Part shown: positions 10,926 to 61,244 of the stretch, in pieces
Layout: each line of letters starts with the position of its first letter
Numbering within the stretch: the first letter of the stretch is position 1
DNA from: Haplodiscus bocki
Taxonomy: Eukaryota
Assembly: GCA_965655095.1 (NCBI GenBank)
Contig: OZ296650.1
Location: 133,982,001 to 134,046,000, forward strand
Direction of reading: 5' to 3'
Length of the DNA: 64,000 nt
Made by a program: the position numbers and the translations under genes
Notes under the pieces: model-generated
What the model was told of the DNA's origin: nothing
The model's input: only the letters and a program-made list of their open reading frames with translations
Databases searched by the model: none

Positions 10926-10943
10926 TGACCACCCAGTGGAGGC
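10926..10943 (+). repeat. Invariant junction 18-mer TGACCACCCAGTGGAGGC (A1/A2)
   Basis: Exact match; 1 of 7. Confidence 0.97.
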
Positions 10944-12089
10944 AAAGGTACCGTTCGCTAGAGAGGCCCAGTGAATGTTGGATAGGTATCTGTGGACACC
11001 AACTGAAATGGAGTTTTGTCATAAAAGTAAAAAAAATTAACTCTCAATCTCAACAGAACAGAAGCTAAAACCGTTCAAGAAATGAACAACAATAGCCAAA
11101 ACGGAAAAATAGATCCGACTTTATCAAAGAAAAACCCCTGAGTAAAAGAACTTTTTCCAACTCCTATTGAAAAAACCAGGTCCAAAAATAACAATTAAAT
11201 TTTGAGAAGAAACATAAAACTCAAAACAGCTGTTTATGAAAAATTTCAAAGCTCCTACACGTTTTCCCATTTATAAATGTTCCTAAAAGATCGATATGTC
11301 TACATAGCAAAACGAGGCTCACACACTGCAAAATTCGCTCAACCTTCTTTACTGTCTTATTTTAAACGAGAATTTCATCTCCGTTTAATCACTGCGACAT
11401 TTTGAACAAAGACAACATAGACTTCTGTGAGCGTACCACTGACTTGGGACATCGAAATGACTTCACGGCTCATGCAAACTATAAATCGTTGCTATTCACA
11501 GTGAATCTCTTTTAGAACTTTGAACACTTTCAAAGTATTTTCATTTGTTCCTCCAACTTTATGAGTAAACTATTTGAACACGAGGCAAATCGCGAACCAA
11601 AAGTTCCTATCTAATTTGAGTACGTTAAATTTATCAATATCTTGACAAATTGGAGCAAATATATCTTCTAATACTAATGATAGCATCATTATTGAGAGGC
11701 CACTGACTTAAGAAAATTACTTCCAAAGTGCTTTACTAACATTGAAAAGCGTAGTGAAAATTTCATAAAACCTTCAACGTGGATTATTGAAGTAAATCGA
11801 ACTACTTTACAGAGAATAATGCAGGGTACTGCCATAACGAAACAAGATTTATTTAGGTGAGAGAAAAACAGTTGTTTGTTTCATTGTAAAGTTTGTGGAA
11901 AGAAGGTTTAAATGTAAAAGAGACCATGTAAAGTTGAGTTGCTAAGGCAACTGCGTTGAATTCATCGACGGCACTACAGAATAACAATAGATGTGAAACT
12001 TTCAAAAAGGAACATCCTTCTATATGTTCATTCTCATTCGACTTCAAAAAGCACATATCCGTAGGGGATTTTGAAAAATCCATAACAAA

Positions 12090-13082
12090 TCAATCGTGCT
12101 GAACATTCGGGTTGGCATGCTGTAGTGGAGGTGGCCGATTGGGCGGTTGCCGAGCATTACCAATAGTGTACTTCAAGTTGTTCGGGATTACCGAAGCTGG
12201 CATAAGACGACAAATTCGCACATGATGAACAGCTTGAGTAATTGACTCATCACTGACACTGGATTTGCTGTAGCCAGATATTCTCCAACCACCATTATCG
12301 TTGACATATGCTGTCACCCTAGTCATTGATTCACGCAACAGATTCAATTCAACCGAGCTAGCTGGCAATCGAAGAACGTCATTGCTGCAAAAGAACGATG
12401 CCAACTGATGACTTTGGGTCATGTCTCCGCTCAGGGGATCGTCCGCTTCTTCTTCCACGTCCCTAGAAATGATGCGTGCGGCGACAGTCCACGACGAAAC
12501 TGAATTCTTGTGTAAGCAAGCGCACACCGTTTCATTTCTGAGAATACGACGGTCGCACATACTTCCAGAACACGTAGGTGATATAATGTTTCCATGCAAA
12601 AACAACAAATTTCTACTGTTCAGAGTGTAATGGAACATTGCGGGCGTGCTCGGTAGGGAAATAATTGGAATTGGCGGAAAATCCTCATTGCTTACGTTAT
12701 TGATAACAACGATCGCCTGATGAGTTTCAATAATCGGATTATTTTTGTCATTCCCTAAACACGTGTTCGAATATATAGGCTCTGTAACCTCTACAACAGA
12801 ACCAACAGTCAGATGACGATCCGAAAACAGTTTAGCAGACTTCTGCGCGGAAACTGAGATGACGACAAAACAATCTTTACTATTCCATTGACCAATAATA
12901 GCCATTCTGTCATATGTCCCTTCAGGAAGTGGTCGTTTCAATTTTGTAGCTTGAGGTCTAAACAACTGAAGTGGCCGATCACTTTTTTTCAGAACCAAAA
13001 CTATCCCCCTTATTACAGTGTTCTGGCTGTTGCGCAGGAAACCTTCGCCTGTAACTTCAGCAACAGTTACTTGTCTATTCAT
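12090..13082 (-). CDS. Conserved 330 aa accessory protein (ORF2); possible OB-fold plus Cys4 zinc site
   Basis: Clear full-length homolog of 42356-43366 (RGIVLV, PLQLFRPQ, LTVGS...EP, CLGND, PTCSGxMCDRR...CxC, NGGW). The fold is an inference. Confidence 0.85.
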   Translation of the reverse strand: MNRQVTVAEVTGEGFLRNSQNTVIRGIVLVLKKSDRPLQLFRPQATKLKRPLPEGTYDRMAIIGQWNSKDCFVVISVSAQKSAKLFSDRHLTVGSVVEVTEPIYSNTCLGNDKNNPIIETHQAIVVINNVSNEDFPPIPIISLPSTPAMFHYTLNSRNLLFLHGNIISPTCSGSMCDRRILRNETVCACLHKNSVSSWTVAARIISRDVEEEADDPLSGDMTQSHQLASFFCSNDVLRLPASSVELNLLRESMTRVTAYVNDNGGWRISGYSKSSVSDESITQAVHHVRICRLMPASVIPNNLKYTIGNARQPPNRPPPLQHANPNVQHD

Positions 13083-14025
13083 TTCTTAAAAAATGCAAAA
13101 GGATGTGTTTCAAACGAGGAAGTACACGATAAAAAACACAAGTCAAGATTTGCAGTCTGATTTCTCTCAAACGGAAAAACGCCCAATGAACAAAGAAAAA
13201 TTTTTGATGAAAGAAAACTTTAGAAAATCCGTTTTTTTATTAAAGCCTAGCAACTCTTCAGTCCCGTCTATGGTACACTTTGTCTGGAATCAACTGAATC
13301 TGCAGTCATTTATCGGGTGTGTCCTCAAAACAGTTTTCCACTCCAAGTCAAAAATTGGTCGCATACCGAAAACATATAAATTGAAACACAGATAGTACAT
13401 TAAACTGAATTTCCTCTGAACTATTTCTATTTCCAAAAACAAAACAATTTACAACAGATTCCAGTAAAAAAACCTGCATGCCAAAAGGATATAAACAAAA
13501 TGCCAAAAAAGCGTTCAGCTTCAAATAACATCATCAAATGTAAAATCATAGTTCAACTAAATGAATGCAATATTGCCAATTCATTTTTTACATTTAAAAA
13601 CCATATGGCAGCACAAATAGTGCAATTAAACAATAACACCAAAACATGACAGAAATGACCGCATTACAAATATTCACGCGGTGTTAAAACACCGACGGAC
13701 TTCCTAATCATCAAGTTATCTTCATGGAGCTTGCGGTAATTGATGCCTATGCCGATTCGTGAAACTCACATCTGTTTCTTTTGACCTGCAAGAAACAGAT
13801 AATCTTGAAATAGTTCGCAGAGGACTTGCTTGTTTTCACGATGAATCGTGAAAACAAGCAAGTGCTGTTATTGAAGCATAAAAAACTCTCCAGTTAACTC
13901 TTCCAACTCCGGATTTGGTTACCAAAAACTTTAAACTATTGACACTGAGTAAAATGAATATGTTATGCACGAAATTTGTATCTACTCACTTGGTTCGGAT
14001 GTTAAATGCATCAACCGTGTAATCA

Positions 14026-14679
14026 CTAACGTTCCGGTTTTCTTTCAAAAATTGTGGCAAAAATATGTTGCTGCTTATCTTCGAAATTGTCAATAAAACA
14101 GAAACCAAAAACTAAAACACTAACTTTGTTTCGGAGATTATTGCGTCTATTGCGGCACCGACGCAAAGTCAAATCCTGCAAACCATTGTTCAACAGTGTT
14201 CTGGATAGCATATGATTCTCTAACAAGCTATTCAGGTGCAGATCGTTACTTTCATCAAGTAAAAGTTTGTACCGTTTTGATAGAATCGATTTCATTTTCA
14301 AAAAAATAATTCCTGTTGGACAATTTTCCAAGAGCTCGTTTAAATTATGCGCTCCTGATCGTGGTAAGTAGGAAAAAGCCACGACATTGAATTTTCTCAA
14401 GTACGCCAGTTTACTGAAAAAAGCCTCAGGACTCATTGCCGGATTCTTCTTGCTTGACAAAGAGTTATTGACAGCATCATGCCAAATGATAACCTTTCTT
14501 CCATTAGTGTTGCAGGAATTCGATTGAAGAAGATAACAAATGTTTTTTTCTGGTTGGTAGTTATTTAGCGAAGCACCAGAAATTGCACAAAATTGTGACT
14601 TGAAAGGATCAAAGAGGTAAGGTTTCTCCTGAGCTGCCCAATAAAGGGAAGAGGCCGCCAAAACAAAATATTCAGACAT
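14026..14679 (-). CDS. 217 aa protein, probable divergent SGNH-hydrolase-like
   Basis: ATG-started ORF in the same position as the SGNH gene of element B. Block-like motifs FVLAASS, ISGASL, IIWHDAVNN and DLHLN are in SGNH order. Confidence 0.5.
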   Translation of the reverse strand: MSEYFVLAASSLYWAAQEKPYLFDPFKSQFCAISGASLNNYQPEKNICYLLQSNSCNTNGRKVIIWHDAVNNSLSSKKNPAMSPEAFFSKLAYLRKFNVVAFSYLPRSGAHNLNELLENCPTGIIFLKMKSILSKRYKLLLDESNDLHLNSLLENHMLSRTLLNNGLQDLTLRRCRNRRNNLRNKVSVLVFGFCFIDNFEDKQQHIFATIFERKPER

Positions 14680-16020
14680 AACAACCGGAAACCGAAAGAC
14701 AATGTATTATGAAAACAAACAAACGAACGAAACATACTTTATATTGTTTACTTTGCAATTAGAAAAACCTACTCAAACTCCAGAATCTCCTTTCATTCAT
14801 GTCATTTGCTTATTAGAACAAAAACGAAGTCAAACAAAAATTCACAACGGCCACACAGCTACAGAGTCGTCAATACGGTCAAAAATCAGAAATGTTCTTT
14901 GAGGAAAGGAAATTTTATAAAAAATACAATAGCCACATACCCGAAGAATGAAAATCTCACTCAAACAACTCGATATGCACGAAATAAGAGCCCCTCTTTA
15001 ATCGCTGCAAAGAAGTACATAGTGGTGAAACACTTCAATTCACAAAAGTAACGATAATAAAAAAGCTTCTCATAAAACAAATGATAGAGCGTTTAATGAC
15101 TTGAAAGAAAAAGTGTTCACAGCTTCCGTAACAAGGAATATGGAATGGATTTGAAAGGTGCCGCGCTACAAATGAACTCCGCTGCTATCTCTTTATGTTT
15201 CCAGGCCAGTTTGTAGAACATGGGTTGCTGGACAACCAACTCATATACGTTCATCTAACAAACAACATTCTAATTGAGAACTTGCGTCGGCGGTTGCTGA
15301 GCAACCAGCAAAACAAAACATGAAAGCTAAATTGCCTCCGTCAGCTATAAAAAAAATAAATCATTATATGAGTCAGAATTAACATCTAAAACAGCTCACA
15401 GTCAGTGATACAATCACAAAACATAAACAGCAATGTCACATTGTAGAAACCCCGTCACATTCTCTTGCAGTTGACAATTTTTTCAATAAATTTCTGCACT
15501 GATTACCGAACAAAAAGTTAAACCCCTATAGCGTCTGAAATATTGGAAACAATCTCCCAAAAACATCAAAACAGCTCCTTCAGTGTAATTACAGACACAT
15601 GTCAAAACAAATTATGGCGGAAAAGGATTGTATGATTCTTTCAATTACCGTGTGATATAATTGTGTACGTTATTCCATAAAGTATCATAGCATAAAAGTT
15701 CGATCACGAATCTAAACAAAGTTACTCAGTGAGTCCAACGAAAAGGTGATAAAAATGAAAACGACATCCCGTTACAAAATTAATCTTCCAACTATTACAA
15801 CACATCCTTTTTTTCAAAGGTTGGCTCAAAACCAACAGCAAACAATGGCAAAGAATCAAATCAATCAACATGATTGGCTACAAAAATTATTTGCTGAAAA
15901 GTTGGTTTCGGACAAACCAATGTTCAGGAATACTTTTGAAATACAATCGGTTTTCTCGATGGCAGTTTTACAAAAGTCTAAATCGTTGTAGACAATTACA
16001 TATGAACAATCAAATAAACA

Positions 16021-19000
16021 CTAAAAATTCTGCATGCAATCACATTCCAGGGCTGTTTCGATACCTGTAACTTTATACAAATCCATAAGAACATGGCATT
16101 CTGACAAGTAATCTGCAAGCGTTAGCATCACATTCGAATATTTGTGATTAACCATTGCTCTTTGCCAATCCTGTTCGAAAGAGTAACGGCTTCGGGAAAC
16201 AGCGTTGGAAAACCCCGTCACGTAAGCAACTAAAGCCCAGGGTCTTCTTTCAACAGGCTTTGTAAATGCGCTCCCATTTCCCGAATTATGCTCCTGCAAT
16301 CGTCGCCGCAACGTCTTACAGCTTCCAATGTAAAAAAGTTCCCTGCGTTTAACGCTCACCAACAAATAACAGTAACCAATTGCCGAAAGGGGTACATCAA
16401 AAACACGTAAGGGAAAGGGATAAAATGTCTGGATCGCTGAAACACCGGAATTACAACTGCCACGAGACGACAAAAAGTTATCTATCAAAGGTACCAAATG
16501 GCTATCTTTGCGGCAAAGAAGATTAATTGCATCAAGTGTACGCTGCTTGTCACCGACAAACGTTATATGGGAAAGATCAGTGACCCGACTAACAACTACA
16601 TAAAGCTGCTCTTTCAGCCAGTAGGAAAATTTTTTACCACCAACAATCTGTGTTGCCAAGCTTGGAACAGTGTCACCCATTATTTTGTGAACCGTTGACG
16701 CCACATACATTTTCAAAGGAAACTGAACACGTCTGCAAACGGTAGAATTGCTATACTTATGGAGAACGCCAATTCTTTTACGAACAACTACAAGTCTCCA
16801 GGAATTAACGTCCGGGTTGTTAGATGACACAGACCTTACTCCGGCTGGTGCAACTCTCACAACAATATGAGGATCATTTTCATCGAACGATTCAACTAAA
16901 CACAATTGTCCCTGGAACAGTTTCAGCGATGGCAAATTGCAAGTTGAGCGCAATACACACCCAACATGTATGAACAAAGACTCTGGCTCAAGGCAACTTC
17001 GGTTGAGGAACTTGCTGACGGGTGCTGTTGCGGTAACCCAATTCTGGGTTCCTGTATTTGACATTTCATCCTTGCAATGGAAAGACACACTCTGTATGTT
17101 TTGATGTGTTGTCACAAACGATATTCTCTCTTCCACGGCCTCTTTTTCCGCAACTCGCGTACTGAACACTCTCAAAATATCCAGAGGGACTTCCGTCCAC
17201 GTGCTTACAAAAATACAGAACTTGTCAATGATCTCACAACACTCCTTAATACATGCTTCTGTCACAGGATATTCAGACAGCAAATCCAGAAGTCTCTTTC
17301 CTTGCTGGTTCTGCATCCTCACATAGTGCTTCAAATACCGAACCTCGAAATTAGCTAACACCGAGTTGCTCAGCAAAAGGAACGTTCCCGTAGGAGGCGG
17401 AAGTTGACGAAAATCACCTGTGCAAATAACAATCTTTCCTCCAAAAGGAAGATTGTTTTCAGACACGGCTTGCAACACATTGTCCATTGCGGACCAAAGT
17501 TCAGCTGAAATCATTGAGACTTCCTCGACAAATAAAACATCCAACCTCTCCAAAAAAGTAAATTTTAGAGGATCTCGGGCAAGAGTGTTCAATGCATGCG
17601 AAACTAGATGAGTCACCGTTCCATTTTGAACGACAGGGAAAGGGATTAAAGCGTTTATGTGTCTTCCGCCGAAAAGTGAAGCTCTCTCCGCAGCGACACT
17701 AGTTATGACGCATCTCAATCCCCTAGCTAGAGCCGCGATCACACAATGGATCAACACATGGCTCTTTCCTGTACCTGGTGGACCAACTATGAACTGATGT
17801 TTAATAAAGGCAGTCGTACAAGAACAATAATTATCGTACAAAGAACAAACGTAATCCAAAATATTCTGTTGATCATGCAATGATTCGTCAGTCTGGTTGC
17901 GCGCTTTATGTATCTTCTGGCTCCAAGTAAAAGGACGTGCTAAGGTGGCGTTCATCAATTCTGCATACGTTGGTAAACCAACATAACCCCCATTGGCAAT
18001 GGCACACAGAAGACTCTCTTTCTGCGCATTTAATTCGTGTGAAATATTGCTGTCACTCTGCTGCACAATACTCTGTTCTAAGACGCGCGGTGTTGAGCAC
18101 GGAAAAACGACCGAATTATTTTGTGCTGCTTGCTGGATGCACAAATAGGCACTCGTAACAAATCGATCTAGTAAAGTAGATGATCCTGGATAATAGCGTA
18201 ATTGTTCAAGCACAAAGCGCCGAACAACATCAATAACTTCGGAATCTTCGCATCCCAAATGAGACCTCGCTAAAGAAGCCTCAAAGAACGCAGATTTCAT
18301 ATTAGATTGAGAAAAAATGTTAAGTTCGGTTACGTATTCTCCAAGAGACAACAGAATGTGGGTCAAAAAATTGGTTGTGTTCCTCGGAACAACGTTCGAT
18401 AAAACTACTTGAGTTTGACAAACCTTTTTGTCATAAATGAACTTGTGACTTGAACTGCTCGTTGTACATGCAATGGCTTCATGACATTGCCTGGAGAAAC
18501 GACGGACCCCACTAGAAAAGTTGCGACAGTAGTTGAAAAAAGCTTCTTTGTACAAAGCATTAAGGTATATGCAATAGCCGAGGCCATCCACCCAATATGA
18601 TTTGGTTACATTTCTCTTTAGTAAACTTTCTGGTGTCAACTTTGAGGGCTTTCGGAAGCGGCAGAACCAAGTAAAATAGTTTTCCACTTTGAGCACAAAA
18701 GTTAGTTCAGGGGGTCGTACACCAAAAACTGTTATCTTGTCTGGAGAAAGAGAACTTTTTTCTGCATCAATTATCAGCAGCTTCTGATTAACCGTGAAGC
18801 AACGGTGAGGAGGAAAGTCCTTGCTGTGTCTAATGGAACTCTGGCGCCCAAAAAGAGGACCCTGATTGCTACTAGAAAGCCTGCATTTCGGTTCAATGAC
18901 TATTCCAGCCCGTTTCTCTCGCGGGGCAGTGACAACATGAATGAATTGTATATTGGTCACCACGTAAGGAAATCGCAATGACCACCACACGGATTCCGTT

Positions 19001-22000: not shown

Positions 22001-24358
22001 TAATTACCGACAGCTTTCAGCAACTGGAAAGTGTGACTAGCGTAATTCGCTTTGGCATTCTTCAAAATACGCAAATTTGGAGCAACAAATGCTAATCTGT
22101 CGTTGGTAGGAACACTGAGACGTCCCAGAGACGGGTGTGCAGGCGGGTGAAGATACTGCAGGTGAGACCCATTGTTATGCTGCACACAAGTTCCGATAAC
22201 AAGGCCATATGCCCCATTAACACTGACAAAGCCGGAAACATCAAACGCATCCAAAACTTTCATTGGTTTCAACCAATCGTCTCTTGCACCTCGCAAATGG
22301 TACAAGTAATCAGAGCTGAACGATGTGAATGAAGGCAAAATCCCATTTACAAGGTGGTTGAAACTGATTCGACCTGTTTCTTCAACAAATGTGAAACAAC
22401 CGAAGGGACATCTACAATTTGGATAACATTCATTATCTAAGGCTTCCTCCAAATCAGTGAAATTACCCGAATTTATTTTGTCCAGAAAAACTTCCTTCCG
22501 TTTTGTTATATCAACTAGAACAGATGGATCACCCATAGAAACAGCAGGATGCAGATGTTGACACATAGCCCAACTGTCGCGTATTTCGGGAGGTAAAAAA
22601 GAAACAAATTTTTTCATAGTACAATCTCGAATGCTGAGATCCTTCAGTAACGAATGAATCACGGAAGGCCAAGCGTACCGCCAACAATTTCCGCCATTAT
22701 TGTAATTGAAACAACTTTGGCAGACCAGACAGGTAGCAGTAGGTCGCAAACCAAATCTCCTTCGTTTGATTGCTGTTTTTTCAAGAGTTTGCCATTGCAA
22801 AGGATAAGCAGGAGTTGAAATTCGACAACATTTACCGCACATTTCTCTGTTTTGTGCTTTGTCGGCTGAAAAAAGTGGACGTCAAAACACAATTGTCACT
22901 CGAGGCATCCTCATTACGACAGGCGTTATCTTTCTTCATAATCATTGTGGCTGTGCCATTGTGTGCGGATTGCGTGGATTGAATCTCCTGAGGCAGGGCA
23001 TTGAAGCAAACACCTGGGCTCAACGGGTCACACTTAGAACCATTTTCTTCACATTCAATTGTCGCTAGGCTTAAACAACTGTTGCTGGGCAACAAAAGGT
23101 CGTTGTGCATACCGCCCAATCCAACAGAGGGTGATGTGAGGCCTTCATCGCACAAATGAGGCAAAACTTTAAATTCAGAACACGCACTACCTTTTGGATC
23201 AGAAGTGTTCGCATGAAATGACGCGGAAATCACATTGCATTGTGATGCCGTATCTGGGAATGAACTCTGGACGCAACCATGAGGCAAACTTTGCTGTGAA
23301 TTTGGATTTTCTGCCGACAACACTGCTACCGTTTCAAAATGGTTACCTGTATGAGTATGTACCAGGAAGACAGATGGAACGTCCATTGAAGCACGATCTC
23401 CGGCATAGCTATAAACTATCCACAATTTTGTCATGCAATGGTAAACGTAAACATCAGCCACCGCAATTTGGGCGAAAGCATAGATCTCTACACAAGTGCC
23501 ATACACACCATTCGATCTCATTCCGGAACGATTCAAATATTCGTTCACGTTTGAAGCTGTCTCTACCACAACATTTCCATCAATGGTTGTGTAAATTTCC
23601 AGAAAATGCGGAGCAATATCTACGGAGGGTAAAGCCAAACAAATACGCTGGCGTAGTTGTGAATGATACCAATATTGTGACCCAATTGACACCGCTAAAG
23701 CAGAGAACAAACAATTACCGTCACCTGGAACAGGATGAGTTTGTGATGGATGCAAACTGTTCAAAGATTTGGCACCCAACAAGTGTGTATTCAATGGTTT
23801 TGCCACAAACGGTATTCCAAACACAATGCAAATTCTCGTCAAATTAGCGATTGTGCATGAAAAAGCTGTTGAATTCGGCACGTTCGAGAAAAGACTCATG
23901 GTATTGAATGGCGCAGAAAACAGCGACCGATCAAAATAGTCTTCACCAACTGAGGCTTTTACCATGGATGATTGGAAACAGGAGCAGTCTTTGCTGCCAT
24001 AAAAACGCCCACATGTTACGCATTTCCTGGGCTCTCTGCACAATTTCTTTTTTTTTGGCGGGCCAGGGTTGGTTTCTATACCACTTCTCAACAGAAACAA
24101 AAGTAACATTCTGCGAGTCATCGAAACCTCATCAGAATTGCCGATCCTCATAAACTGCAAGTGATCCTGAAGACACAAAGAGACACAAAATTCCCCAACG
24201 GTGACGTCTGAGCTGAAGACTTCTCCGACATTGTTCACATAAACAATTCCATCTTTTTCCAAAACTGTCCATAAAGAAGACCAAATCATCAACAAAGTTA
24301 AACAAAGTGAGTAAACCATTTTCTGAAAATGAGATTCGTCAAAACTCTGTACACCCAT
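16021..24358 (-). CDS. 2A-like leader/OTU/HUH-Rep/PIF1/GIY-YIG protein, copy A2, split by one +1 frameshift (ORFs 22832-24364 and 16021-22842)
   Basis: Same motifs as A1. A6 at 22869-22874 versus A5 at 7875-7879 in A1; removing one base gives a continuous ~2778 aa ORF from the ATG at 24358. Confidence 0.85.
24059..24121 (-). other. 2A-like StopGo peptide motif, copy A2
   Basis: Identical to 9053-9115. Confidence 0.65.
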
Positions 24359-46767: not shown

Positions 46768-46807
46768 TCCCTGGCTGTGCCTAGGGACTCCCTGGCTGTG
46801 CCTAGGG
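46768..46807. repeat. Short tandem duplication, TCCCTGGCTGTGCCTAGGG x2 (21 nt period)
   Basis: Read directly from the sequence. Confidence 0.85.
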
Positions 46808-51200: not shown

Positions 51201-54200
51201 GGAGTAACACTGACCAAAGTCTTCAGAAAGAGTAGTTTTCGCTGCAGGTGCGGCCTTGCTTCTTTTTTGCGCTGTCCTCATTTGCAATGTAACAGTTGCG
51301 TCTGCAAACGTCACTTCAACGAAGGTCAGCAGCAGCCAAACAGACGTGTTCTGATAGATCCAGTACCGATGAGAGAAATTGGAACTAGGAAGCGTTTTTC
51401 ACAATCTTCTTCAGAGTCTTCTAACTCGGAGGTTCTTTCGGAAAATTGCTCTAGCATACAATCGAATGTATGCGAACCTGACGCTGCCATGGAAGCTGTT
51501 AGCATTGAGCGAGGCGAAATTTCTTCTGCAGTTGGTTTTGTTTTTCACAGAAACGACAATACTGGACTTTCTGAGGAGAATACTGAGGTAATGCGTCGAC
51601 TCCAAACTTCGGCGGATCATATGGCAATTTCGATTGATGCAGAAAGAGAAGATCTTTTCAAATTGCCTCTTCATATTCTGCTCAATTCCCAATGCAATCT
51701 TTTGTATCGGCACAAAGGGAACCCGATCAGTCTTTCACTTGAAGAGAGACGTTTTTTAGAACACATCGCAGCAACTTCCACGGCAACTTTGCCTCTAATT
51801 CAAACAGAATCTCTTTTGAAGAACCAAATTTTGGTGTCCAGCTAAAAATGGCATTTTTCATGGAGCAATACCAGCTGCACAATATAACTCATCCAGAAAT
51901 AACAGGCAACTCGGTTTCGCTGGTTTTGAAGACATGCTTCGTACTAGAATCAAAGATGGTTCCCTACTGACATCATGTAATTCAACATATTTGCAGTACG
52001 TTTTGGACAGTCTCTTGAATATGCGACTTCATACAACTGATGTTAGGTTGGTTTTGAATCGAGGGTGGCAAGAATTTAGTTCTGTCCCTCAAAACTGTTC
52101 ATTCGTTTCGATACAAACGTTCAAATTTGATCGTGCCGAAAGTTGTAAAAAGGATTGCGAGCTGGCAGCTCCAATTCGTGATAAAAATCCGACATATTTT
52201 GTGATATAAACCTGCCGCCAGTCAACCCACCCCGGGATTCGAGAAAATTTCAAAGCCCTACAAGACCTGTATCCCCCTGAAACTACTCCAAAGGATCTGC
52301 TCTCAGCAGCTATCCAAGCAGAACTGATGCCAATGCTCAGGTGTTGGTATCGAGCTTCACAATACGTTATGGAGTTGGTGAACAAGTCTCCAGAAAAACC
52401 ACTAGGACCAGTTTCTCACATTTGGATGCGGTATGAATGGCAAAACGAAACAGCTGGGTTCCCTCATCTGCATTCGATACTTTGTACACAACAAGACAAG
52501 TTCTCAATTGAAGTCAGATCTACAGTATGCTGTTCGAAAGTAACGTTTTTAGGTGCTTCAGAAAAAAGTTCCCCTGCATTGAGCACAGATGAACGGTTGC
52601 ATCTCAGTGAATTATTCTAGAAATATCGAATTCATAGCTGTGCCAAAGGGCGTCGAAGGTGCCATAAAAATCAGATCGTATCAATCGACCAATATGTCGT
52701 GTGCCCAAATATCCATGATCAAATGCATTTACCTTAAAAGAAGTTCCTATTAACTCTTCATATGAAACAATGGACCTTTTACAGGAGGTGGATTTAGCTG
52801 AAATTGATGATAAAACTTTGTTACCGAAATTGAAGAGCTCCCTACTTGCTGGGAAGCATCACTATCCTACTGTGTCGAACGAGCATTTCTCACCAACTAA
52901 CGCACCTTTGTTTGCGTTGACCCAATCGAGCACTAACGTTCGAGGTTGTGACGATTACATGGCACCCCGTTATATTGCGAAGTATGCAGCGGGTATTGAA
53001 TCTCGAGCAGCGGCTAAAATTGTCACTGGTGAGACAGAAAACAGCGTTAAAGTTTTGACGGAGCCAGTAGAGCAGGAGAAGGTAGCAGGAATCCAGGCTA
53101 GTTTGAAGACGTTGCGACAGGAAGAGAAACAAAAATCATTGACGGGCCGAGTTGTCAGCATAACTGAATGTCTCTGGGGGTGCTTACAACTTCCTTACGT
53201 TTGCACAAACGCAGATTTTATCCACCTGTCTACAGTACCCAAAGAATATCGTTTTTAAATGAGAAGCCTTTTATCAAGGCTCCGAAATTTTGGAGCCACT
53301 TTCACTGATCGCGTCCAAATACGATCGAGGTACTACGTTTTCCGAAACAGAGACAATTCACAGAAAATCAGGTCCTCCTCCTTGCAGATGTTGAAAGCAG
53401 CTGCCTTTCCCCTGACAAAATAACTGTTTTGACTCAGGCCACTGGAACTTTTGTTCGTATCCAAGTTAAAAGACTACTACAGCTGGTTTGTTCGGTGGAA
53501 ACCAAAAAGTACCAACAGCATCAGCAGTCATGAAAAGTTCTTGAAACAAAGTGTCAATAAAAGTTGTTGGGTTGTTGCAATTGGATATCTGGTAAAAATG
53601 CACCCTGGCTCTTTCATTAATCTTTGTCAAGGAAAAAAAAGATGGAGGACGGAATAGCATTCTGAAACGCGAAACGAGGAAACACATTGTTCCAGTTCTT
53701 CTGAAGGAAAAAAATCTCAGTTTTTTGCACTCTGGAAACACTTGTTTGAAGAAGAGGCCTTAGTGGTTTTCAGTAGCATTTTACCGAATAACCCAACGAA
53801 GTTTGTACTTCACCTGTTACTAACCTTCGGTGATTTCGAAACGGAGCAGGATATGTTGAATGTTCAAACTCTTAAAGAAACCTACATAAAAGCAAAAGTT
53901 TTGTCAGACCAGACGGTCAATGAGGAGACGGTCAAGGAATTGACAAAGAAATATTTGCTTGAGCAACTTCGCTTCACTCCAGGGTCTTCTAAGTTAATTG
54001 ACTCATTCCTACTAATGGCCCAAATTGTTCTTGGAGATGCCCTTTTAAGAAATAGCCTTTATTTTGCAGCTGCCCTACCAGTTGTGCTGGACAAAAGTGT
54101 GCTTGAAGAACGCGGGGAAACGGTGACAATTCAACTGGTGATGGAAAAAAGTAAAATGGTGGCTTATCATCAGACTTGTCAGACACCATTACCCATTGAG

Positions 54201-56147
54201 CAGACGATGTTGGATGCAACTGTCGAGAACGCAGTGCCTTGGAAGCCAATTATACGGAAAAGTTCCGATCAATCTAAAAACTCTTATCTTGAACAAAGTC
54301 GACTTTTAGACAAACTCATCAATTCAATTGATAAGTACAAACAGGGGCATTGCACCTTCACAAGACATCAGATCATTTTTCGTCCACCAGGAAGCGGCAA
54401 AACATTCGTCATGCTGAAATCTCTTGCATATGCTATTTGTCAGGGATTGAATTATGTGGTGACAGTTCTAGCAACTGAAAGATCTGCCGCCTTAGCAGGG
54501 AAACATTTATATGCTCTAATCTCGTTTCCAGTTGAAAAATCTCCCTCAGCCGGATCACTTTCGAAAAAAAGCTTTGTCTAATTTACAACAATCTCCTATC
54601 AAAAGCCGAATTTTGCAGAATCTAGATGTTTTTTTCCAAAGAATTGTCGATGATTTGTAGCGAGCTTTGGGCAGCAACAAATCACATTTTGCAGGTAGTC
54701 ACTTCAAATTATGTTCCTTTCGGCGGAAAGCTGGTTGTTGCAACTGGTGATTTCTTTCAACTTCTTCCGCCGTCGGGCTCCTACTTGATGAGTTCCTCTT
54801 TCCGTTTAACAACCTTCGCCTTCTCCCCCTTGGAAAGTTTCGTTCAAATGCGCAACAAAAACGGGCAAGAACTGTTGTCATTGTTATCAGCAACACCAAA
54901 AACAGATAAAAACGCGGAACGTATTCGGAAAATAATCGAGAAAGATTGCACTTTTGTACAATCCTGGAACGAAGTGCCCAACAATAGAATTCGAATTTTC
55001 GCAACTAGACAGGCGGAACGGAAAGCAACTGAGAGTAAAATTGCTGAAGTGAAAAGCAGTGGAACTAAATTTTTTGAAAGTGCATCGATCGACGAAATGT
55101 GCCTTTCGAGCATCGACAACTGGACAGAGGCGTCCGTAACAGCTTCTAAATTCCTGAAAAAAAGTGCCTTGAGCCCCAATCTTTATTTCTGTACGCTGGT
55201 GCCATTTTGCGTTCACCTGTCAACAAACCATCTTTATCAGCATATCAAGGTCAAAATTGCGTCCGTCTCTCTTTGGATACCATTGAAAGTGGCACTGTAA
55301 CAATTGCTCTTGCTCCAGCTGGATGCCGAACGATCCCACTGCTATCTGTGATCAGGAACAGTTGGCGGTGTGTTGCAATCGGCAAAGAAACCGGTGTTGC
55401 ATTGTGATTGAATCATAAAATAGTGTGCAGAAGAATTCAATTTCCTTTAAAACTGTTCGTTGCCTCCACTAGTCATAAAACTATGGGTGGAACTTTGCCG
55501 ATGGTAGCGACGCAAATAGTGGGTTCAAAAGATTTTGCTTTATGGCTTCCTGAGCAGTTGTGTGTGGTAATGAGTAGGGTAAGGAATTTAAACCAAGTCA
55601 CTTTCGTAGGTACGAAGGAGGCCAAGAGAGCAGCAGTTTTAGGATTGGTCCGAAAAAGATCACAGTGGAGTGAGTTGACAAGTGAAATTTTGACAAAAAG
55701 TTCTGCTCGTGATCCTACTTTTTTTCTTGCCAATGCATCCCCCTTCCCTCCCACAACTCGAGACTTGCCAACCCAAAACTTGGGCTTTTCTTACTTTCTA
55801 CAGAGTTTCCCACAAAATGAGCTCTTATACATTAGGTCCACCATGTCTTTGTTGCGTCGTTTAAAGGAACACAATGCTGGATTAGGTTGCTCCTTCGCAA
55901 AACTTCAAAATCGATTCCCCTGGAAAGTTTGTGCCTATGTAACTGGATTCATCTACCCTAATGCCTCTCAAAGAATCCGTGTTTTTGAGGAAGAATGGCT
56001 GAATGCTGCATCGAGCTACGTAAACGTGAAAAAAAATGTCTCACTGTTCACAGCCTCAGCTTAGGCGAAATTATTGCAAGCAACTGGCCGCACAAAGATG
56101 ACGATTTGAAATTTGTAGTAAGTTGCAATGATTCCACTACCTACTGA
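48265..56147 (+). pseudogene. Degenerate OTU/Rep/PIF1/GIY-YIG gene
   Basis: Many colinear ORF fragments match element B (KRRRCTSCGQFVG, RYEWQNETAGFPHLH, YIAKY, RPPGSGKT, EHNAGLG). Numerous stops and frameshifts; OTU Cys>Tyr (GDGNY); YIG>YIR. Confidence 0.92.
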
Positions 56148-59100
56148 AAACCTTCTGAAAGACTGCATTCATTTAATTAAAGATGGCGAAACTTTTCTCA
56201 CGGTCCACCTGCTGCTCTGTAGAACAATTTCAAGAATGCGTTGCTGCCAATCACTTCAACTGTACAGTGGAGTGTTGGTAGACTTTGCTATTGTGCGTCC
56301 ATGATTACTTGCATCGACTGCACAGTGATGCAAAATTTTAGCCTGGGCGCCTTATTCAACTTCCAACCAGTGGAACGATTGCTTCGACTGTACGTGTTGC
56401 ACTCTGAAGCAATACCTCGACTTTCATGTACTACCCCTAATGATATGGATTGGTGTAATTTTTGATTGTTCTGAATACTGTGTTAGTTAAGTGTTTAAGT
56501 GTTTTAAAGTAACCTTGTAATTTTGATAATAAACTGAAAACCTTCCTTTTCAAAATTTGTTCTCAAAGCATTCAGTCTATCTATTCAATTTAATGGTTTG
56601 TGCTGACTTCTGTTTTTCCGGTTTTCTTTTTTTCAGTCTGTGAAATACAATTTTTGCTGCATTGATCAACCTGGGCAGAGGTTTCATCTGAAACTTTTCT
56701 CGAGAAATTTCCCAGGAACATTTTTTCCAGCAGAAACTTTGCATGTCAGTCATCTTTTCCAACACTCTTTTTAAAAGTACCTTTTGATGTGTTTCCCAGG
56801 ACGGCTGCTCTCTTTTCCACCTTTGCGACTTGCATCGTTAACCTTAAAGGACGTGGCTGAAGAATCTTGCATTGTAAAGAAAAACGGATTTGAAAGGTTT
56901 TCCTCGTTTTGGGTATGCTAATCAGGACATTAGAACCGCTTTTGGATTTCTGGACCCTTTATAATGTCAACTGTAATATCCATATTTGCCAAAGGTGTGG
57001 CAATAAACTTTCTGCAAACTTCACTTTTGGGAAAGTGATTGCGAAACTACGTAAAATAACAATAGAAACGTGTGATGTTAGCTTTTCCGAAGTCAGTACT
57101 CCAGTGAAAGGTTACTCGGTAGGCTTCTGTTTGGATCAAAATATTTGTTCAAAAACATTGTGAGGTTTTTTTAAAAACCCGAAGGCTATGCAAGTTTAGG
57201 AGGTACTTAATAAATGAAGAAAGTTTGACTGCCTTAAAGCTTGTACCTGCCGATAACGGATGTCGTACAGAGATGAGGCAATTTTGGATCAACTTCGCCA
57301 GCAGGTTTTTGCTCATTGCATTTCATACGGCCGAAAGTCAGGTTTTTCCAGGAGTTTTTGCACAGGTTCCATTCAATATTTCACTTGAGCAATAGAAAAC
57401 GTACAATGTGTAAAATAAAGAAATTTTAAAAGTTTTTGCTTCTCAGGACTGCGACTATACGTTGATGATGATAACGTCTCACGGATTTTGTTAGCTGCAC
57501 ATGAAATATTTTTGGAATGCAGAAATGCAATGAACGCAGGGTGTTAGCCCGACATTTGCTGTAGTAACTACGTGAAGTTTCCCCAAACGAAATACATGGG
57601 AATACATATGCGTGGAAGTATGTTTTTTTTTTGAAATACATGTAATGATTTCCGCACTGCCACGCACATGGTTACGGTAAAAAAAATAGGCTTTCAATGC
57701 AGCATGCTGCATAACTGTTCACTGATAACCTGTGACCTAAATGTGAATTTAGAGTGTCCCTGCATTTTCCTTTGGGTCCTGTTATTTGGAAATTATACAT
57801 TTTATTACGTCGTCTGAGTACAGTAGACTTTTGAGTAATTCCTTTTTGATTTTTTCCGAAATTTTACCGAGGTAAATGCCCCAAAATTAGCAGTTCGTCT
57901 ACCGAGGAATGCGTTTTTGCATTCTCGTCAAAGTGTTAGCCCATTATAATGTGTCTTCATACGTCATTACAAGTGCTGGCAATGTCCATCGCTTTGGAAA
58001 CGATATGACGGAGAGAATGCAAAAGGTGTTGAATAAAAATGTTCTTGAAGACATAATTTTGTACGGTTCACTTAGTATAAACGCGAAACGAAATTTCTCT
58101 TATTTAGGAAGATATCTCGATGTATGCGTATTTGTAGAATTGTTACTGCTTTTGATTAACCCTCGCAATACGTGGCTTACAATTTCTTCTGAACCACTTC
58201 AACATTTCATTGCAAAGGACTTTCCACCGAGCAAACCCAACAATATCCACTGAGTGAAAACATGTAACAGAAGAAACAACGAAATTATTGTTGAAGTCTA
58301 CAGTTTTTTTCATTTTTCACTTATTCGGTGCCTTGGAAAATTTTACAATTTTCCATTCATTGACTCCACACAGCCCTTTAATGTATACCAGTAAAACATG
58401 TTCCTGTCTCAACACTTGGTTAGCAGTGACTTCTTCAGATTCAGGGCTTAAATTAATCGGTTGCCTGAATATGAGTTGACACAGAACGTCGATGGTTTTG
58501 CTTAATATGACAAAAAGTACGCTTTTCCCCTTATATGCTTTCTGGTTATCGTCATACTGCTTGATTAATGGATTGTTTTTGTTCCGGAAAGAACTTAATT
58601 GAATTGAGATGAATTGATTCGTTTTCAGTTTCTTTGAAATGCTAATGTACTTCGAAAAAACCCTAAATTAAACTGTTCCCATCTTTTTACACCCTCATGG
58701 ACTGCGATCAAGAAAAAGTTCTTTACGAAAACTTCTTGAGGGTGTTGCTTTTCTGGAGCTGTAGCGAAGTATTTCGTTTCTAATAATTTAAATCGAATCT
58801 TTCATGAACCATAAAAACAACTTGCAGCTAAGTATGAGTTTTCTGTGGTACAGCAAACAATCCCGCGCCGAAGTAACATGAATTTTTTTACCATGCCTCT
58901 AAATTTTGCCCCTGTTTTCTTCCACATTTGTCAACCTTCAGGATCAGTGCAAAGGGAGAGCAGTTCAATTGAAATGATCTTCCTGGGAATGACAACAACA
59001 AGATAGTTTTTTAAATGCACCGAAAAAAGCAATGATGAAAGTACTAGTTTTCATTTGAAAAGGATTTATTGGAAACTGTACGACGCATTTTGAGTGTGCA

Positions 59101-60178
59101 GCTAGATTTTTTTGAACTTTTTCGTTGGTTGAACTGTTCGTTTGAACTGAATATCTTCTGAAATTTGTGCATCCCAGTAAATATAGCGGTGACCAGTTGT
59201 GCACAAAAACCCGACTTTTTCGGTGATTTTCATGACTTGAAGCAGTTAAGTTCGTCTTGCGTCTTGTTTCCCGTTTCCTGAGCGAAATTTTCTTTTCTCA
59301 TTCTCTTTTCTTCGAATCTTCCAATATATCGGGAATGTTTTTGGTCAGCATCCTTGAAAGTGGTTCTTGCGGGAACATAAACATATTTTGCTAATTTAAA
59401 AAACAACGGGTCGGAAATCGTGGTATTGAATATTCAGCTTTGTTTCCAAACATATTGACAAACAATTAGATTTTTCAGATGAGTCCTTTCCGAATGGAGA
59501 ATTTGTGCCACCAGTAGATTGTGGTTTGCTTTTGGAAGGCACAATTGTGACAATTGAATTCTACTATAAAAACTAATTTTTTTGTGAGTTTAATTTTTTT
59601 TTTCAAAAAATTCGTCATAACCGTCATTTTTTTCGGCAAACTGGCCAAAATTTTTTCAACTTCGAAAAATTGTCTTTCAAGTTATGGAGTCAATTTCATA
59701 ATGGAGCCACTCCAGAGTGCCAACTATGTACTTCAAAGTAGGAGCTATGACGAAATGATCGATTTTCGGCAATTTTTTCCATCTTTGATGCGTCATATCT
59801 CCACACCTATGACGAGTAGGTAGAAATTTTTTAGCATGTGTATAGCTCTTAGTTAATCTGCTTCACTCGAAAAGATTCGGCCAAATGCATGTGGTTACTT
59901 GCAGGGCGGTTGGTAAAAAACTGCAAAAAGAGGCCAGAAAACAGAATCATCCCGTCATAACTCCCCAACCAAATGAGCTAGGAAGATCAATCTTGCACCA
60001 TTGTTCTTAGAATTGAAAGTTATGCCCGCATGCAAAGTTTGATCCAAATCGTATGGGTGGGAGATGAGATCGCTAATTCCCTATACCGTTTGTGCATATT
60101 TGTTTTTTCATATATTTTAACGCTCGGCAAAGGGGCCCCTCCCCCGCCTCGCAAGGACTAATGTGGGGCGCGATCCCC

Positions 60179-60196
60179 TGACCACCCAGTGGAGGC
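60179..60196 (+). repeat. Invariant junction 18-mer (C/N3)
   Basis: Exact match. Confidence 0.97.
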
Positions 60197-61226
60197 ACCG
60201 GTGAAAATCACCAGGTGGCGGTCACTGGATATACACCTCTGAAAAAGGAAAAAAAACTACTAGTCTTTTCCTCGAACACAGTATTGATTTTTGCAAACGC
60301 ATGTTTTATACATTGAAATTGAGCCGTTGAAATCTTCGTTGATATCAAAAAGACATCGATGATGAAACTTGCGAACGCTTTGGCCCCGTTGTTTCTCCGT
60401 GCCGCTTCGCTAATCTACGAAACAACGGGGCCGGGCAATTAACAATTTGACTTTTGAGATTTTCCCCCTCAATTTTAGACCAAATTAAATATTACTTTTT
60501 TCCCAGAAAAACTTCAAAACTTCAACCAACGAAAGATGCTAAACTTCAAAAGGCTGCACATTAAGACAATTCTGAAGGACAACTGGCGGAATAAATGCCA
60601 GATTTGAATTCTTGAATTAAAACTGGGTTTTTGTAAATTTTCATTTTTTTTCTGAATTTTTCGTCATAACCGTCATTTTTTTCGGCATACTGGCCGAAAA
60701 TTTTTTATCGTCGAAAAACTATCTTTCAAATTATGGGGTCAATTTCATACTGGGGCCACTCCAAAGCGCAAACTAGGTAATTCAAAGTTGGAGCTATGAC
60801 GAAATGATCAAATTTTGGCATTTTTTTCCAAATTTGATGCGTCATATCTCCACACTTATGACGAATTGGTAGAAAAATTTTACATGTGTGTAGCTCTTTG
60901 TTATTCTGCTTCACACGAAAAGTTTCGGCCAAATGCATGTGGTTAATTGCAGGGCTGTTGGTTAAAAACTGCAAAAAATGGCCAAAAAACAGAATCATTC
61001 CGTCATAATTCCCCAACCAGTTTTGCTAGAATGATCTAACTTGCACCATTGTTCATAGAATTGTAAACTATGCCTGCATGCAAAGTCTCGTCAAAATCGT
61101 ATGGGTGGGAGCTGAGATCGCAAATTCCCTATACCGTATGTTCGTATTTGTTATTTCTTATATTTTAACGCGAGGCAAAGGGGCCCCTCCCCCGCCTCGC
61201 CAGGACGTATGACGGGCGCAATCCCT

Positions 61227-61244
61227 TGACCACCCAGTGGAGGC
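61227..61244 (+). repeat. Invariant junction 18-mer (N3/D)
   Basis: Exact match. Confidence 0.97.

Follow-up and report, generated by a model that had tools for sequence, protein, structure and literature searches.

How do very different Helitron-like elements come to stand head to tail on one strand, joined at the same short sequence? The window (the whole 64,000-nt stretch of Haplodiscus bocki DNA that was analysed) holds seven exact copies of TGACCACCCAGTGGAGGC, all on the + strand, starting at 10926, 25932, 26989, 28046, 44962, 60179 and 61227. This gives spacings of 15006, 1057, 1057, 16916, 15217 and 1048 bp, as a sequence-only reading of this DNA had described. A search of the window that allowed up to three mismatches returned no further copy. 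Shuffling predicts 0.02 copies by chance, and seven were reached in 0 of 100 shuffles. Every copy is the gap-free joint of two neighbouring units, in the order A1, A2, N1, N2, B, C, D and E.

Unit A1, 1..10933, + strand: autonomous; 5' part left of the window; gene block inverted relative to the termini; 99.65% identical to 14995-25955
A1 RepHel ORF, 1114-8274, - strand: Helitron_like_N, PIF1 and GIY-YIG
A1 second ORF, 8204-9358, - strand: weak OTU match
Unit A2, 10934..25939, + strand: complete, 15,006 bp; 5' start CAGTGGAGGCAAAGGTACC, 3' end ...CCCTGACCACC
A2 ORFs, 22832-24364, 16021-22842 (RepHel), 14026-14679 and 12090-13082 (ORF3-like), - strand
Unit N1, 25940..26996, + strand: 1,057 bp, non-autonomous; a scan for ORFs of at least 150 aa found none
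Unit N2, 26997..28053, + strand: 1,057 bp, 83% identical to N1
Unit B, 28054..44969, + strand: 16,916 bp, autonomous; genes co-oriented with the termini
Unit C, 44970..60186, + strand: 15,217 bp, decayed autonomous element; RepHel in at least six ORF pieces, 49816-56064
Unit D, 60187..61234, + strand: 1,048 bp, non-autonomous; N-like 5' start and B/C-like 3' 660 bp (85-88% identical)
Unit E (partial), 61235..64000, + strand: B-like 5' start; reaches the window end

Alignment of 200 nt on either side of each copy, together with self-BLAST of the window, separates the two flanks. Sequence upstream groups by the left unit (copies 1 and 2 with A, 3 and 4 with N, and 5 to 7 with the 3' ends of B, C and D), and sequence downstream groups by the right unit (copy 1 with A, 2 and 3 with N, 6 with the N-like D, and 4, 5 and 7 with B/C/E). 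At all seven junctions the homology switch falls within the 18-mer and spacer is absent. The earlier statements that each flank tracks its own unit, and that the crossover lies in the 18-mer with neither spacer nor target duplication, are borne out by this comparison. By self-BLAST, identity is 99.65% between A1 and A2 (over 10.9 kb), 83% between N1 and N2, and 66-73% between B and C. Beyond the 18-mer, about 25 nt downstream are common to six of the seven junctions, and a 3' region of 150-660 nt preceding it is also common to units. The decayed unit C is flanked by intact sites, which had been offered as further evidence. The weight of this is slight, because a handful of mutations can disable an 8-kb ORF while overall divergence stays low. 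The exact 18-mer and the same junction architecture also occur in another assembly (L126).

The autonomous units (12-19 kb) encode an OTU domain, an HUH/two-tyrosine Rep, a PIF1 helicase and an SLX1-like GIY-YIG nuclease; the remaining units, of about 1-5 kb, are non-coding. Unit B has two main open reading frames.

B polyprotein ORF, 2,689 aa, 31514..39583, + strand: OTU-like, Cys-rich region, Rep, PIF1 helicase and SLX1-like GIY-YIG (Pfam)
ORF3, 336 aa, 42356..43366, + strand: conserved in relatives

In the polyprotein the HUH motif reads PHIHAL, the tyrosines lie in RYxAKY and the helicase carries GPPGTGKT; the alignment columns H1455/H1457, Y1624/Y1628 and G2100-K2106 are invariant. The HUH, YxxxY, Walker A and GIY-YIG motifs are unchanged across proteins only 24-53% identical to it, and the B-type protein is predicted to have this catalytic equipment. 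Against PDB, the B protein matches SLX1 (E 4e-9), and the family profile matches PIF1 (1e-21), Helraiser 7lcc (4e-13, helicase part only), SLX1 (2e-11) and OTUD3 (2e-5). All full-length RepHel proteins in the clade carry a fused SLX1-like nuclease. ORF3 has no Pfam domain match; its tblastn identity is 62% in L001, 42-43% in L003 and L004, and 49% in unit A, where the counterpart is the A2 ORF at 12090-13082 (- strand). The RepHel domain content upholds the identification of the units as Helitron-like rolling-circle elements, and on sequence grounds they appear to form a divergent lineage of that group.

To place the crossover, we compared 73 junctions, drawn from the window and from 11 loci in other assemblies, comprising 25 3'-end types and 24 5'-start types in 48 distinct pairings. 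All 73 lack spacer and keep to one strand per locus, and only CCACC and the AG of YAG are invariant. Sequence to the left of CCACC goes with the left unit, whereas Y and all beyond go with the right unit. Specifically, positions -6/-7 are variable inside no more than 1 of the 15 left types having at least two partners, against 5-6 such right types; position +1 (Y) is variable inside 4 of 15 left types, against 0 of 11 right types. The crossover therefore maps to CCACC. In other words, the 18-mer consists of a 3' terminus, TGACCACC, and the 5' start that follows it, CAGTGGAGGC. The latter happens to be common to the families of the window; other families in like arrays start with TAG-CGCTGGAGGC, TAG-ACGTGCACGG, TAG-CTGAGGACTG and so on. 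The comparison thus rejects a single 18-bp site, and the view of the 18-mer as the functional unit falls with it. The junction between B and C and the hairpins preceding it illustrate the arrangement.

Junction B/C, 44962..44979, + strand: 3' terminus TGACCACC at 44962-44969, then 5' start CAGTGGAGGC at 44970-44979
Large GC-rich 3' subterminal hairpin of B, 44905..44935, + strand: stem GCGAGGC with GCCTCGC, inner GGGG with CCCC, loop CCCCT
Small 3' hairpin, 44948..44960, + strand: GGGG-N5-CCC, ending 1-2 nt before TGACCACC

A unit runs from 5'-YAG to a large hairpin, a small hairpin and RACCACC-3', and a 3' end joined to a 5' start gives the 9-nt core ACCACC/YAG (the slash marks the joint). 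The outer stem of the large hairpin differs among families with pairing kept (GCCGC with GCGGC, CGCGGCC with GGCCGCG, GCCAT with ATGGC), and the 5' terminal sequence is complementary to subterminal 3' sequence directly upstream of the hairpin, as in ATIRs. The same core is also where a B-type 3' end meets an N-type 5' start in a Logan unitig from a different organism. Upstream of the autonomous copies of L001 and L127, neither a core nor a 3' hairpin was found, which leaves their 5' boundaries undefined; three related families (L003/L130 and L004) have no such termini within 10 kb.

Several loci bear on the movement of single units into junctions. At L002 23932, unit N(a) directly adjoins unit N_x. 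The same flanks surround an autonomous element of 12,072 bp at L002 21064/8992 and, at L133 20555/19296, the 1,259-bp derivative of that element, with 70 of 70 nt identical on each side; the site is paralogous, not allelic, and precise Rep-mediated excision or deletion would look alike. L001 23070-24145 matches L005 26611-25536 at 99.26% from one core to the next, and the neighbours on either side differ. The young P0009 family occurs as a solo in L128, in an array in L129 and in another array in L131. The junctions are not all independent, as a four-unit block (L002 21064-26810) repeats 394-6132 at 89.6%. The paralogous site, seen both empty and filled, and the three neighbourhoods of the young family support precise insertion at resident junctions.

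The L128 solo is surrounded by non-element DNA, and each of its ends carries one part of the 18-mer: AAATCATC directly precedes CAGTGGAGGC, and TGACCACC directly precedes CAGCAAACTT. Its host site, ATCATC/CAG, agrees with the core in 7 of its 9 positions (chance about 0.001-0.002), a pseudo-core that rests on one solo. No second 3' end was found in the 28 kb around it, its host flank has no hairpin, and neither this solo nor the empty/filled site shows a target duplication or repair scar. Insertion at junctions is thus supported, but a restriction to existing junctions is not. The sample is skewed towards DNA lying no more than 10 kb from an autonomous copy.

We consider it probable that the polar head-to-tail array in which the window lies was built by core-targeted, Rep-mediated insertion of Helitron-like elements at resident junctions. 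The Rep, the presumptive cutter, would nick and rejoin single-stranded DNA within or beside CCACC, the exact phosphodiester bond lying somewhere there, and would act on the element's own joined ends, perhaps in single-stranded circles, as well as on the target. The core would arise wherever a 3' end meets a 5' start, in circle or array. If the Rep recognises the same core in both roles, the best genomic target is a resident element's junction or 3' end. A founder would land in a host pseudo-core, AYCAYC/CAG, and its 3' end would create a perfect core, on which later insertions of any core-sharing family would pile up in the same orientation, with neither spacer nor target duplication. The GIY-YIG domain may open or nick the duplex target. 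That such arrays form 'without a recombinase', as was suggested, is a matter of wording, because the HUH Rep would itself be the recombinase.

Alternatively, mixed arrays may form off the chromosome. The Rep could join ends of different elements, or rolling-circle replication could read through a terminator or switch template, and the mixed multimers would integrate as blocks at non-specific sites; the joints would then reflect Rep chemistry, not chromosomal self-targeting. Tandem Helitron copies arising by termination bypass are well documented (PMC4067079; PMC5148889; bioRxiv 10.1101/2021.06.02.446622), and the near-identity of the neighbours A1 and A2 (99.65%) and the recurrence of multi-unit blocks (L002) fit this scenario. 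We nevertheless find it unlikely, given one flank pair seen empty, 12-kb-filled and 1.26-kb-filled with identical flanks, a solo whose host site mimics the core, and 48 pairings that would require very many independent multimer integrations. A different division of labour, in which the GIY-YIG enzyme acts in a homing-like manner, cleaving the duplex at the core or at extruded hairpins so that the element is copied or ligated into the break while the Rep serves replication only, seems quite improbable. It would suit the structure-specific nuclease on every full-length RepHel and the two GC-rich hairpins directly upstream of the core, and an endonuclease role in Helentron target choice has been hypothesised (PMC4067079). 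Counter to this, junctions carry no target duplication or repair scar, the host flank of the solo lacks the hairpin, and HUH enzymes alone suffice for sequence-specific nick-joining in IS608.

Loose insertion into a repeat-rich region, with unequal crossing-over or gene conversion in the 3' regions making and homogenising clean joints, is more doubtful still. The 150-660 bp of common 3' sequence and the higher-order duplications would allow it; however, the homology switch is confined to the 5-nt core, left and right flanks track different families, and polarity is strict in 73 of 73 junctions, with spacer in none. Crossovers in the 3' region would yield chimeric units rather than precise end-to-start joints. 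Least credible is an assembly artefact in which collapsed or mis-joined repeats mimic arrays. Copy number is very high (summed unitig depth 1e3-5e4) and several relatives lie at contig ends (L126), but the same architecture appears in 0.1-1.5 Mb contigs of two other assemblies, the junction sequence is present in short-read unitigs of other runs, and the units within an array differ by 2-35%, which collapsed copies would not.

Core-targeted insertion sets these elements apart from their nearest known counterparts. Like HLE2 (Helitron2/Helentron), they combine a two-tyrosine HUH Rep with PIF1, an upstream OTU and an extra nuclease after the helicase. They also share a 3' subterminal hairpin, ATIR-like 5'/3' complementarity, a transposase gene that may point either way with respect to the termini (PMC3627910), short non-autonomous derivatives with the same termini and the absence of target duplication. 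HLE2 insert between T and T in T-rich DNA, however, whereas the array elements join at ACCACC/YAG; Helentrons carry an APE-type endonuclease in place of the SLX1-like GIY-YIG, a domain noted once, in a moss HLE2 family (PMC11417382). The array elements measure 12-19 kb, with extra conserved genes, and near-exclusive mixed arrays have not been described for HLE2. In sequence comparison (no tree), APE-bearing Helentron-type proteins resemble theirs only remotely (E 2e-8 to 4e-4). Canonical HLE1 Helitrons (Helraiser, Helibat, maize) share RepHel, the 3' hairpin and the lack of target duplication, but their 5'-TC/CTRR-3' ends and targets between A and T are absent here. Tandem copies are known, and distantly related Helitrons sometimes directly adjoin in bat and maize (PMC4067079; PMC5148889); known HLE1 arrays are mostly same-family and ascribed to terminator bypass, unlike many families on one long core. 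According to the available portion of PMC13085455, the 'third clade' Helitrons of Paramecium are likewise divergent, with large ORFs of variable orientation, many non-autonomous derivatives and strict orientation. They lie at chromosome ends and have an inferred specificity for telomeric repeats, a host repeat as opposed to the element's own end junction, and that portion reports no GIY-YIG.

Functional parallels come from IS200/IS605 (IS608 TnpA) and IS91/ISCR, which work in a similar way, with HUH enzymes on single-stranded DNA and subterminal hairpins, but are bacterial and have no helicase fusion, the IS608 enzyme being single-Tyr. IS91 shows rolling-circle behaviour and tandem products. 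In IS608 a single tetranucleotide serves as both target and left cleavage site. Integration takes place 3' of this short sequence, which comes to border the left end and must be present for the next excision; the target is not duplicated (PMC5934647, PMC3201880). Because the right end of IS608 is cleaved at a sequence other than the target (TTAC), the element does not target its own ends, whereas the array element's own 3' end rebuilds the target half-site. Integron cassette arrays offer an analogy only: they too are polar, with heterogeneous discrete units and a short core beside folded single-strand structures, but they use the tyrosine recombinase IntI with attI/attC instead of an HUH Rep carried by some units, and their promoterless genes under a common promoter contrast with short array units that appear non-coding.

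Thus, very different elements would stack head to tail as each newcomer inserts into the short sequence at a resident end/start joint. Such sequence-specific targeting is rare for the Helitron class, and the branch in which it would occur, with its extra SLX1-type nuclease, is little known.

The 18-nt sequence TGACCACCCAGTGGAGGC occurs in seven exact copies in the window, all on the forward strand, against a chance expectation of 0.02, and no further copy with three or fewer mismatches was found there. The seven perfect same-strand copies reported by the sequence-only reading thus recur where it had placed them. That reading also held that upstream sequence tracks the left unit, that downstream sequence tracks the right unit, and that the crossover lies in the 18-mer. 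Alignment of the 200 nt on either side agrees: the switch in homology falls within the 18-mer and there is no spacer. Beyond the 18-mer, conservation between families extends for about 25 nt downstream and 150-660 nt upstream. Unit boundaries, as resolved by self-comparison of the window, define a polar array with the following members, in order:

A1 (partial) and A2: 99.65% identical to each other
N1 and N2: each 1,057 bp, 83% identical to each other
B: 16.9 kb
C: 15.2 kb, its ORF in fragments, identity to B 66-73%
D: 1,048 bp
E: partial

N1, N2 and D contain no ORF of 150 aa or longer and are non-autonomous elements. The last 660 bp of D are 85-88% identical to B and C, whereas N1 and N2 reach only about 65% over the same stretch. 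In D the 5' start is N-like and the 3' end is of the B type; a 3,175-bp unit at L126 1636-4810, in a locus from another assembly, has an N-type start and the 3' end of A. Some non-autonomous units are therefore chimeric, their origin being end shuffling or deletion across a junction.

The gene block of A is wholly inverted relative to its termini. This has a precedent in Helitron2 (PMC3627910), and an account of Paramecium Helitrons describes variable ORF orientation relative to the termini (PMC13085455). The frame encoding the OTU domain, the two-tyrosine HUH Rep and the PIF1 helicase is broken at different points in A1 (1114-9358, minus strand; 2386 + 384 aa) and A2 (16021-24364, minus strand; 2273 + 510 aa), so each has a separate frameshift or stop codon, or contains an indel from assembly. 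Within A, tandem repeats of two 22-23-nt units lie in the 3' part (9700-9746, 10343-10387, 24706-24752 and 25349-25393); within C, 21 nt are perfectly duplicated in tandem in the 5' part (46768-46807). Rfam and tRNA scans of the window gave no matches.

The proteins of A and B are encoded by ORFs of about 2,400-2,700 aa. Pfam recognizes Helitron_like_N (32.0 bits in A, cut-off 28.9; 27.1 bits in B), PIF1 located C-terminal to Rep (E = 3e-13 and 6e-11) and a C-terminal GIY-YIG domain (E = 2e-9 to 4e-9) whose nearest relative is SLX1. N-terminal matches to an OTU-like domain are weak (Pfam E = 3.5e-4 and 2e-3; family profile against OTUD3, 2e-5). When compared with the PDB, the family profile matched PIF1 helicases (1e-21), Helraiser in its helicase part only (4e-13), SLX1 (2e-11) and OTU (2e-5); the Rep region alone had no match among PDB sequences. 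The transposase has no match to Exo_endo_phos, the APE-type endonuclease, and carries GIY-YIG in its place. Across an alignment of nine clade proteins, with 24-53% identity to the B protein, the HUH motif PHIHAL (H1455, H1457), the motif RYxAKY (Y1624, Y1628), Walker A and the GIY-YIG residues are invariant.

An ORF of about 330 aa (ORF3) has no Pfam domain. Copies lie in the window at 12090-13082 (minus strand) and 42356-43366 (plus strand), and in loci of other assemblies at L001 7411-8385, L003 21894-22832 and L004 26517-27470. They share 42-62% amino acid identity in elements whose Rep-helicase proteins are only 40-53% identical to that of B, and ORF3 is likely to be a functional accessory gene of the lineage. 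The ESM Atlas contains PIF1 plus GIY-YIG clusters from other eukaryotes, including one in which diatoms (Bacillariophyta) are the taxon recorded most often, so fusion of the helicase to SLX1 may extend beyond the present host group.

Full-length relatives (24-96% identity) were found in ENA assemblies only, and 14 loci around them were retrieved, a sampling centred on autonomous copies. The same polar, gap-free arrays occur in ten of these loci (L001, L002, L005, L126, L127, L129 and L131-L134), and L128 holds a solo, a lone element copy in non-element DNA. The exact window 18-mer is present in L126, with A-, N- and B-type ends. Right-hand starts in other array loci include TAG-CGCTGGAGGC, TAG-ACGTGCACGG, TAG-CTGAGGACTG and CAG-GACTGCGGG.

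Together, the window, the ten array loci and L128 yield 73 end-to-start junctions, some of them copies made by block duplication, which comprise 25 3'-end types, 24 5'-start types and 48 distinct pairings. When numbered from the bar of the 9-nt core ACCACC|YAG, the junctions show no variation at CCACC (-5 to -1) or AG (+2, +3). Positions -6 and -7 vary within at most one of 15 multi-partner left types, compared with five to six multi-partner right types, and the Y at +1 varies within 4 of 15 left types and none of 11 right types. In other words, -6/-7 follow the left unit and Y follows the right unit, which places the exchange in or at CCACC. On these alignments the left unit reaches at least to -6 and the right unit starts no later than Y. 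The 18-mer reads as the 3' terminus TGACCACC followed by CAGTGGAGGC, the 5' start common to all right-hand window units. Its proposed role as functional origin and target is not borne out, and it was rejected as a single recognition site, because families with other 5' starts join at the identical CCACC|YAG. A Helitron1-type CTAG-3' end, which 50 of the 73 junctions would show if read with the left unit, is disfavoured because Y tracks the right-hand unit.

At the 3' end lie, in order, a large GC-rich hairpin (loop CCCCTNCCCC) with an outer stem that is family-specific yet still paired, a spacer of about 12 nt, a small GGGG-N5-CCCC hairpin and [G/A][A/G]CCACC, with the next unit following directly from YAG. 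RNAalifold recovered only two pairs from 20 3' ends aligned with MAFFT, their stems being out of register. Single-sequence folds of the 3' ends did not have significant z-scores relative to mononucleotide shuffles, so the case for the hairpins is made by their conserved position and by stem differences that preserve pairing. In several families the first 10-15 nt of the unit are complementary to a stretch immediately 5' to the small hairpin at the other end, as AGTGGAGGC is to GCCTC-G-CACT. In a single strand, such pairing would enclose the small hairpin and leave TGACCACC looped beside the stem. The effect is modest: across 27 unit types, the duplex between a unit's own 5' and 3' ends has an energy of -8.8 kcal/mol, compared with -7.6 in mismatched units (p = 0.006) and -7.2 for shuffled 5' ends (p = 1e-4).

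Units behave as discrete, mobile entities. L001 and L005 share a 1,076-bp unit (99.26% identity) whose similarity extends precisely from one core to the next, and its neighbours on both sides differ between the two loci. The autonomous element of family P0016/P0042 and its 1.26-kb deletion derivative adjoin at least five left and at least four right neighbour types. At L002 23932, unit N(a) abuts unit N_x in what is a paralogous empty site; at L002 21064/8992 a 12,072-bp autonomous element lies between these flanks, each of which is unchanged over 70 of 70 nt. The 1,259-bp derivative lies between them at L133 20555/19296, where the left flank is again identical and the right flank differs at one position. 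Filling of the empty site adds solely the element and one copy of the core. The paralogous empty site would be explained equally well by precise excision. Entry of new elements into resident junctions, as the sequence-only reading had proposed, is supported by the empty/filled site and by unit mobility.

Family P0009 is represented by the solo in L128 and by copies in two different arrays, those of L129 and L131. The L128 copy is 94.7% identical to that in L131 and 98.5% identical to that in L129, and its 3' end is the only one within its 28 kb. The sequence across the left boundary of the solo is ...AAATCATC|CAGTGGAGGC... and that across its right boundary ...TGACCACC|CAGCAAACTT..., so the host site is ATCATC|CAG. 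Seven of its nine positions agree with the core, with a chance probability of about 0.001-0.002 for this one solo. Neither the solo flanks nor the empty/filled site show a target-site duplication; the gain is just one core copy. Predominance of dispersed copies with the 18-mer split between their ends in unrelated DNA would have argued against a self-targeting system. Such a copy does exist in L128, but it is the exception in this sample and its host site mimics the core. The 3' end of the solo at once generates a perfect core, ACCACC|CAG, which suggests a route for the seeding of arrays and a cause of their polarity.

Repeats border some of these elements. In L128 a 1,265-bp tandem repeat (1557-4093; 99.6% identity) adjoins the element, and L005 1-3699 holds a tandem repeat of about 900 bp (85-91%) with a 160-bp piece resembling internal 3' sequence of autonomous elements. 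Both may be satellite-like derivatives. Just past the ORF in L003 and L130 is a long array of tandem repeats of about 50-100 bp.

The GIY-YIG families of L003, L130 and L004 (Rep-helicase 40-44% identical to B) lack a large-hairpin/CCACC terminus within 10 kb on either side, as judged for L003 and L004 by strict perfect-hairpin and hairpin-motif scans; the L003/L130 pair, at 79% identity, is too diverged to define ends. For the autonomous copies in L001 and L127, no 5' end was found by the core motif or by homology to the 5' start of the derivative. Both loci have, within 1-10000, an intact gene resembling ORF3 at a distance of 1.5-2.4 kb upstream of the Rep-helicase gene, with no core or 3' hairpin ahead of the element. 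Either these families have a different gene order, or rearrangement or 5' truncation has affected the copies.

Scans of metagenome contigs for GACCACCYAG-N0-3-TGGAGGC returned only isolated chance matches in unrelated soil and gut contigs, and no relatives were found in viral contigs. A search for homologues of Rep and helicase alone reached no canonical Helitrons, only fragments of the same clade, and word-based protein searches also reached remote APE-bearing proteins. Logan unitigs have summed depths of 1e3-5e4, indicating that the families are highly repeated; at 100-650 nt they are too short to bridge units, check long-range assembly or reveal allelic empty sites. One unitig, from a different organism, contains this core with the 3' end of a B-type unit on its left and the 5' start of an N-type unit on its right. 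Sequencing runs labelled as coral or coral-reef metagenome contained 5-19% of the words sampled, which makes a coral or some other reef animal the probable host.

The units belong among Helitron-like elements, with which they share the two-tyrosine HUH Rep, the fused PIF1 helicase, the 3' subterminal hairpin and the absence of target-site duplication. The canonical Helitrons (HLE1) have 5'-TC...CTRR-3' termini and insert between A and T, whereas the present units start with YAG and variable sequence, end in ...RACCACC, and are found at CCACC|YAG junctions or, for the solo, at ATCATC|CAG. The Helitron2/Helentron group (HLE2) inserts between T and T in T-rich DNA, from which the junctions, the solo and the empty/filled site all differ. 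Helentrons carry an APE-type endonuclease after the helicase where these proteins carry an SLX1-like GIY-YIG, and the OTU domain is common to both. The 5'/3' complementarity resembles the asymmetric terminal inverted repeats of HLE2, although the effect is small. By feature comparison, the lineage has the OTU domain of HLE2 without its T|T target or APE nuclease, and departs from HLE1.

IS608 integrates 3' of a tetranucleotide that later serves as its left cleavage site (PMC5934647, PMC3201880). By analogy, and not as membership, the IS200/IS605 target rule resembles the present pattern: CCACC precedes every 5' start in the 73 junctions and ATCATC precedes that of the solo. IS608 is the closest mechanistic analogue, with the difference that here the element's own 3' end would rebuild the target half-site. 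The TnpA proteins of IS200/IS605 are small and have a single tyrosine, whereas here a two-tyrosine Rep and a helicase lie within a protein of about 2,700 aa. Integrons use the tyrosine recombinase IntI, attI and attC gene cassettes; no recombinase domain was found in the six scanned of the window's 16 ORFs of at least 150 aa, and the short units lack ORFs of that size.

Tandem Helitrons or adjacent distant relatives have been described in bat, silkworm, maize, rice and Drosophila, with terminator bypass as the usual cause given (PMC4067079; PMC5148889; bioRxiv 10.1101/2021.06.02.446622). For Helentrons, terminal sequence, endonuclease and target preference have been hypothesized to be connected (PMC4067079). 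A GIY-YIG domain has one prior mention, in a moss HLE2 family (PMC11417382), and the Paramecium study reports a third clade of Helitron-like elements with telomeric-repeat specificity (PMC13085455). Our literature search found no description of a Rep-helicase-GIY-YIG lineage in which the families have a 9-nt end-junction core in common and form mixed arrays by insertion there.

Direct observation covers the anatomy of the elements, where the crossover lies, the discrete and mobile nature of the units, a single empty/filled site, a single solo at a pseudo-core and the intactness of the catalytic motifs. In the mechanism that we consider most likely, the Rep would nick and rejoin single-stranded DNA in or beside CCACC, at the target as well as where the element's ends are joined, so that resident junctions would become preferred targets. 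The SLX1-like nuclease may help to expose or nick the duplex target near the hairpins; we know of no established function for the accessory nucleases of Helentron-type elements. A further-reaching reading, which falls somewhat short of probable, is that a eukaryotic HUH-Rep/helicase/SLX1-nuclease transposase has true sequence-specific integration at the roughly 9-nt ACCACC|YAG between hairpins, acting at its own joined ends and at the target. Units would then be cassette-like and junctions self-propagating landing pads, which would add a third mode of Helitron targeting to A|T and T|T.

Target specificity in Helitron-like elements is usually described as almost absent, being limited to A|T or T|T. 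The lineage described here, as defined by protein architecture, termini and 73 junctions, appears to integrate at a 9-nt sequence that is its own end-to-start joint. With its short oligonucleotide length, its two hairpins and a Rep whose catalytic residues can be identified, the junction offers a concrete substrate for studying HUH-mediated sequence-specific single-strand integration in a eukaryote, one that also suits the GIY-YIG fusion. For genome annotation, such arrays are transposon stacks and not satellites or segmental duplications. If true, the targeting would also account for the way in which very different families form long, strictly polar mixed arrays.
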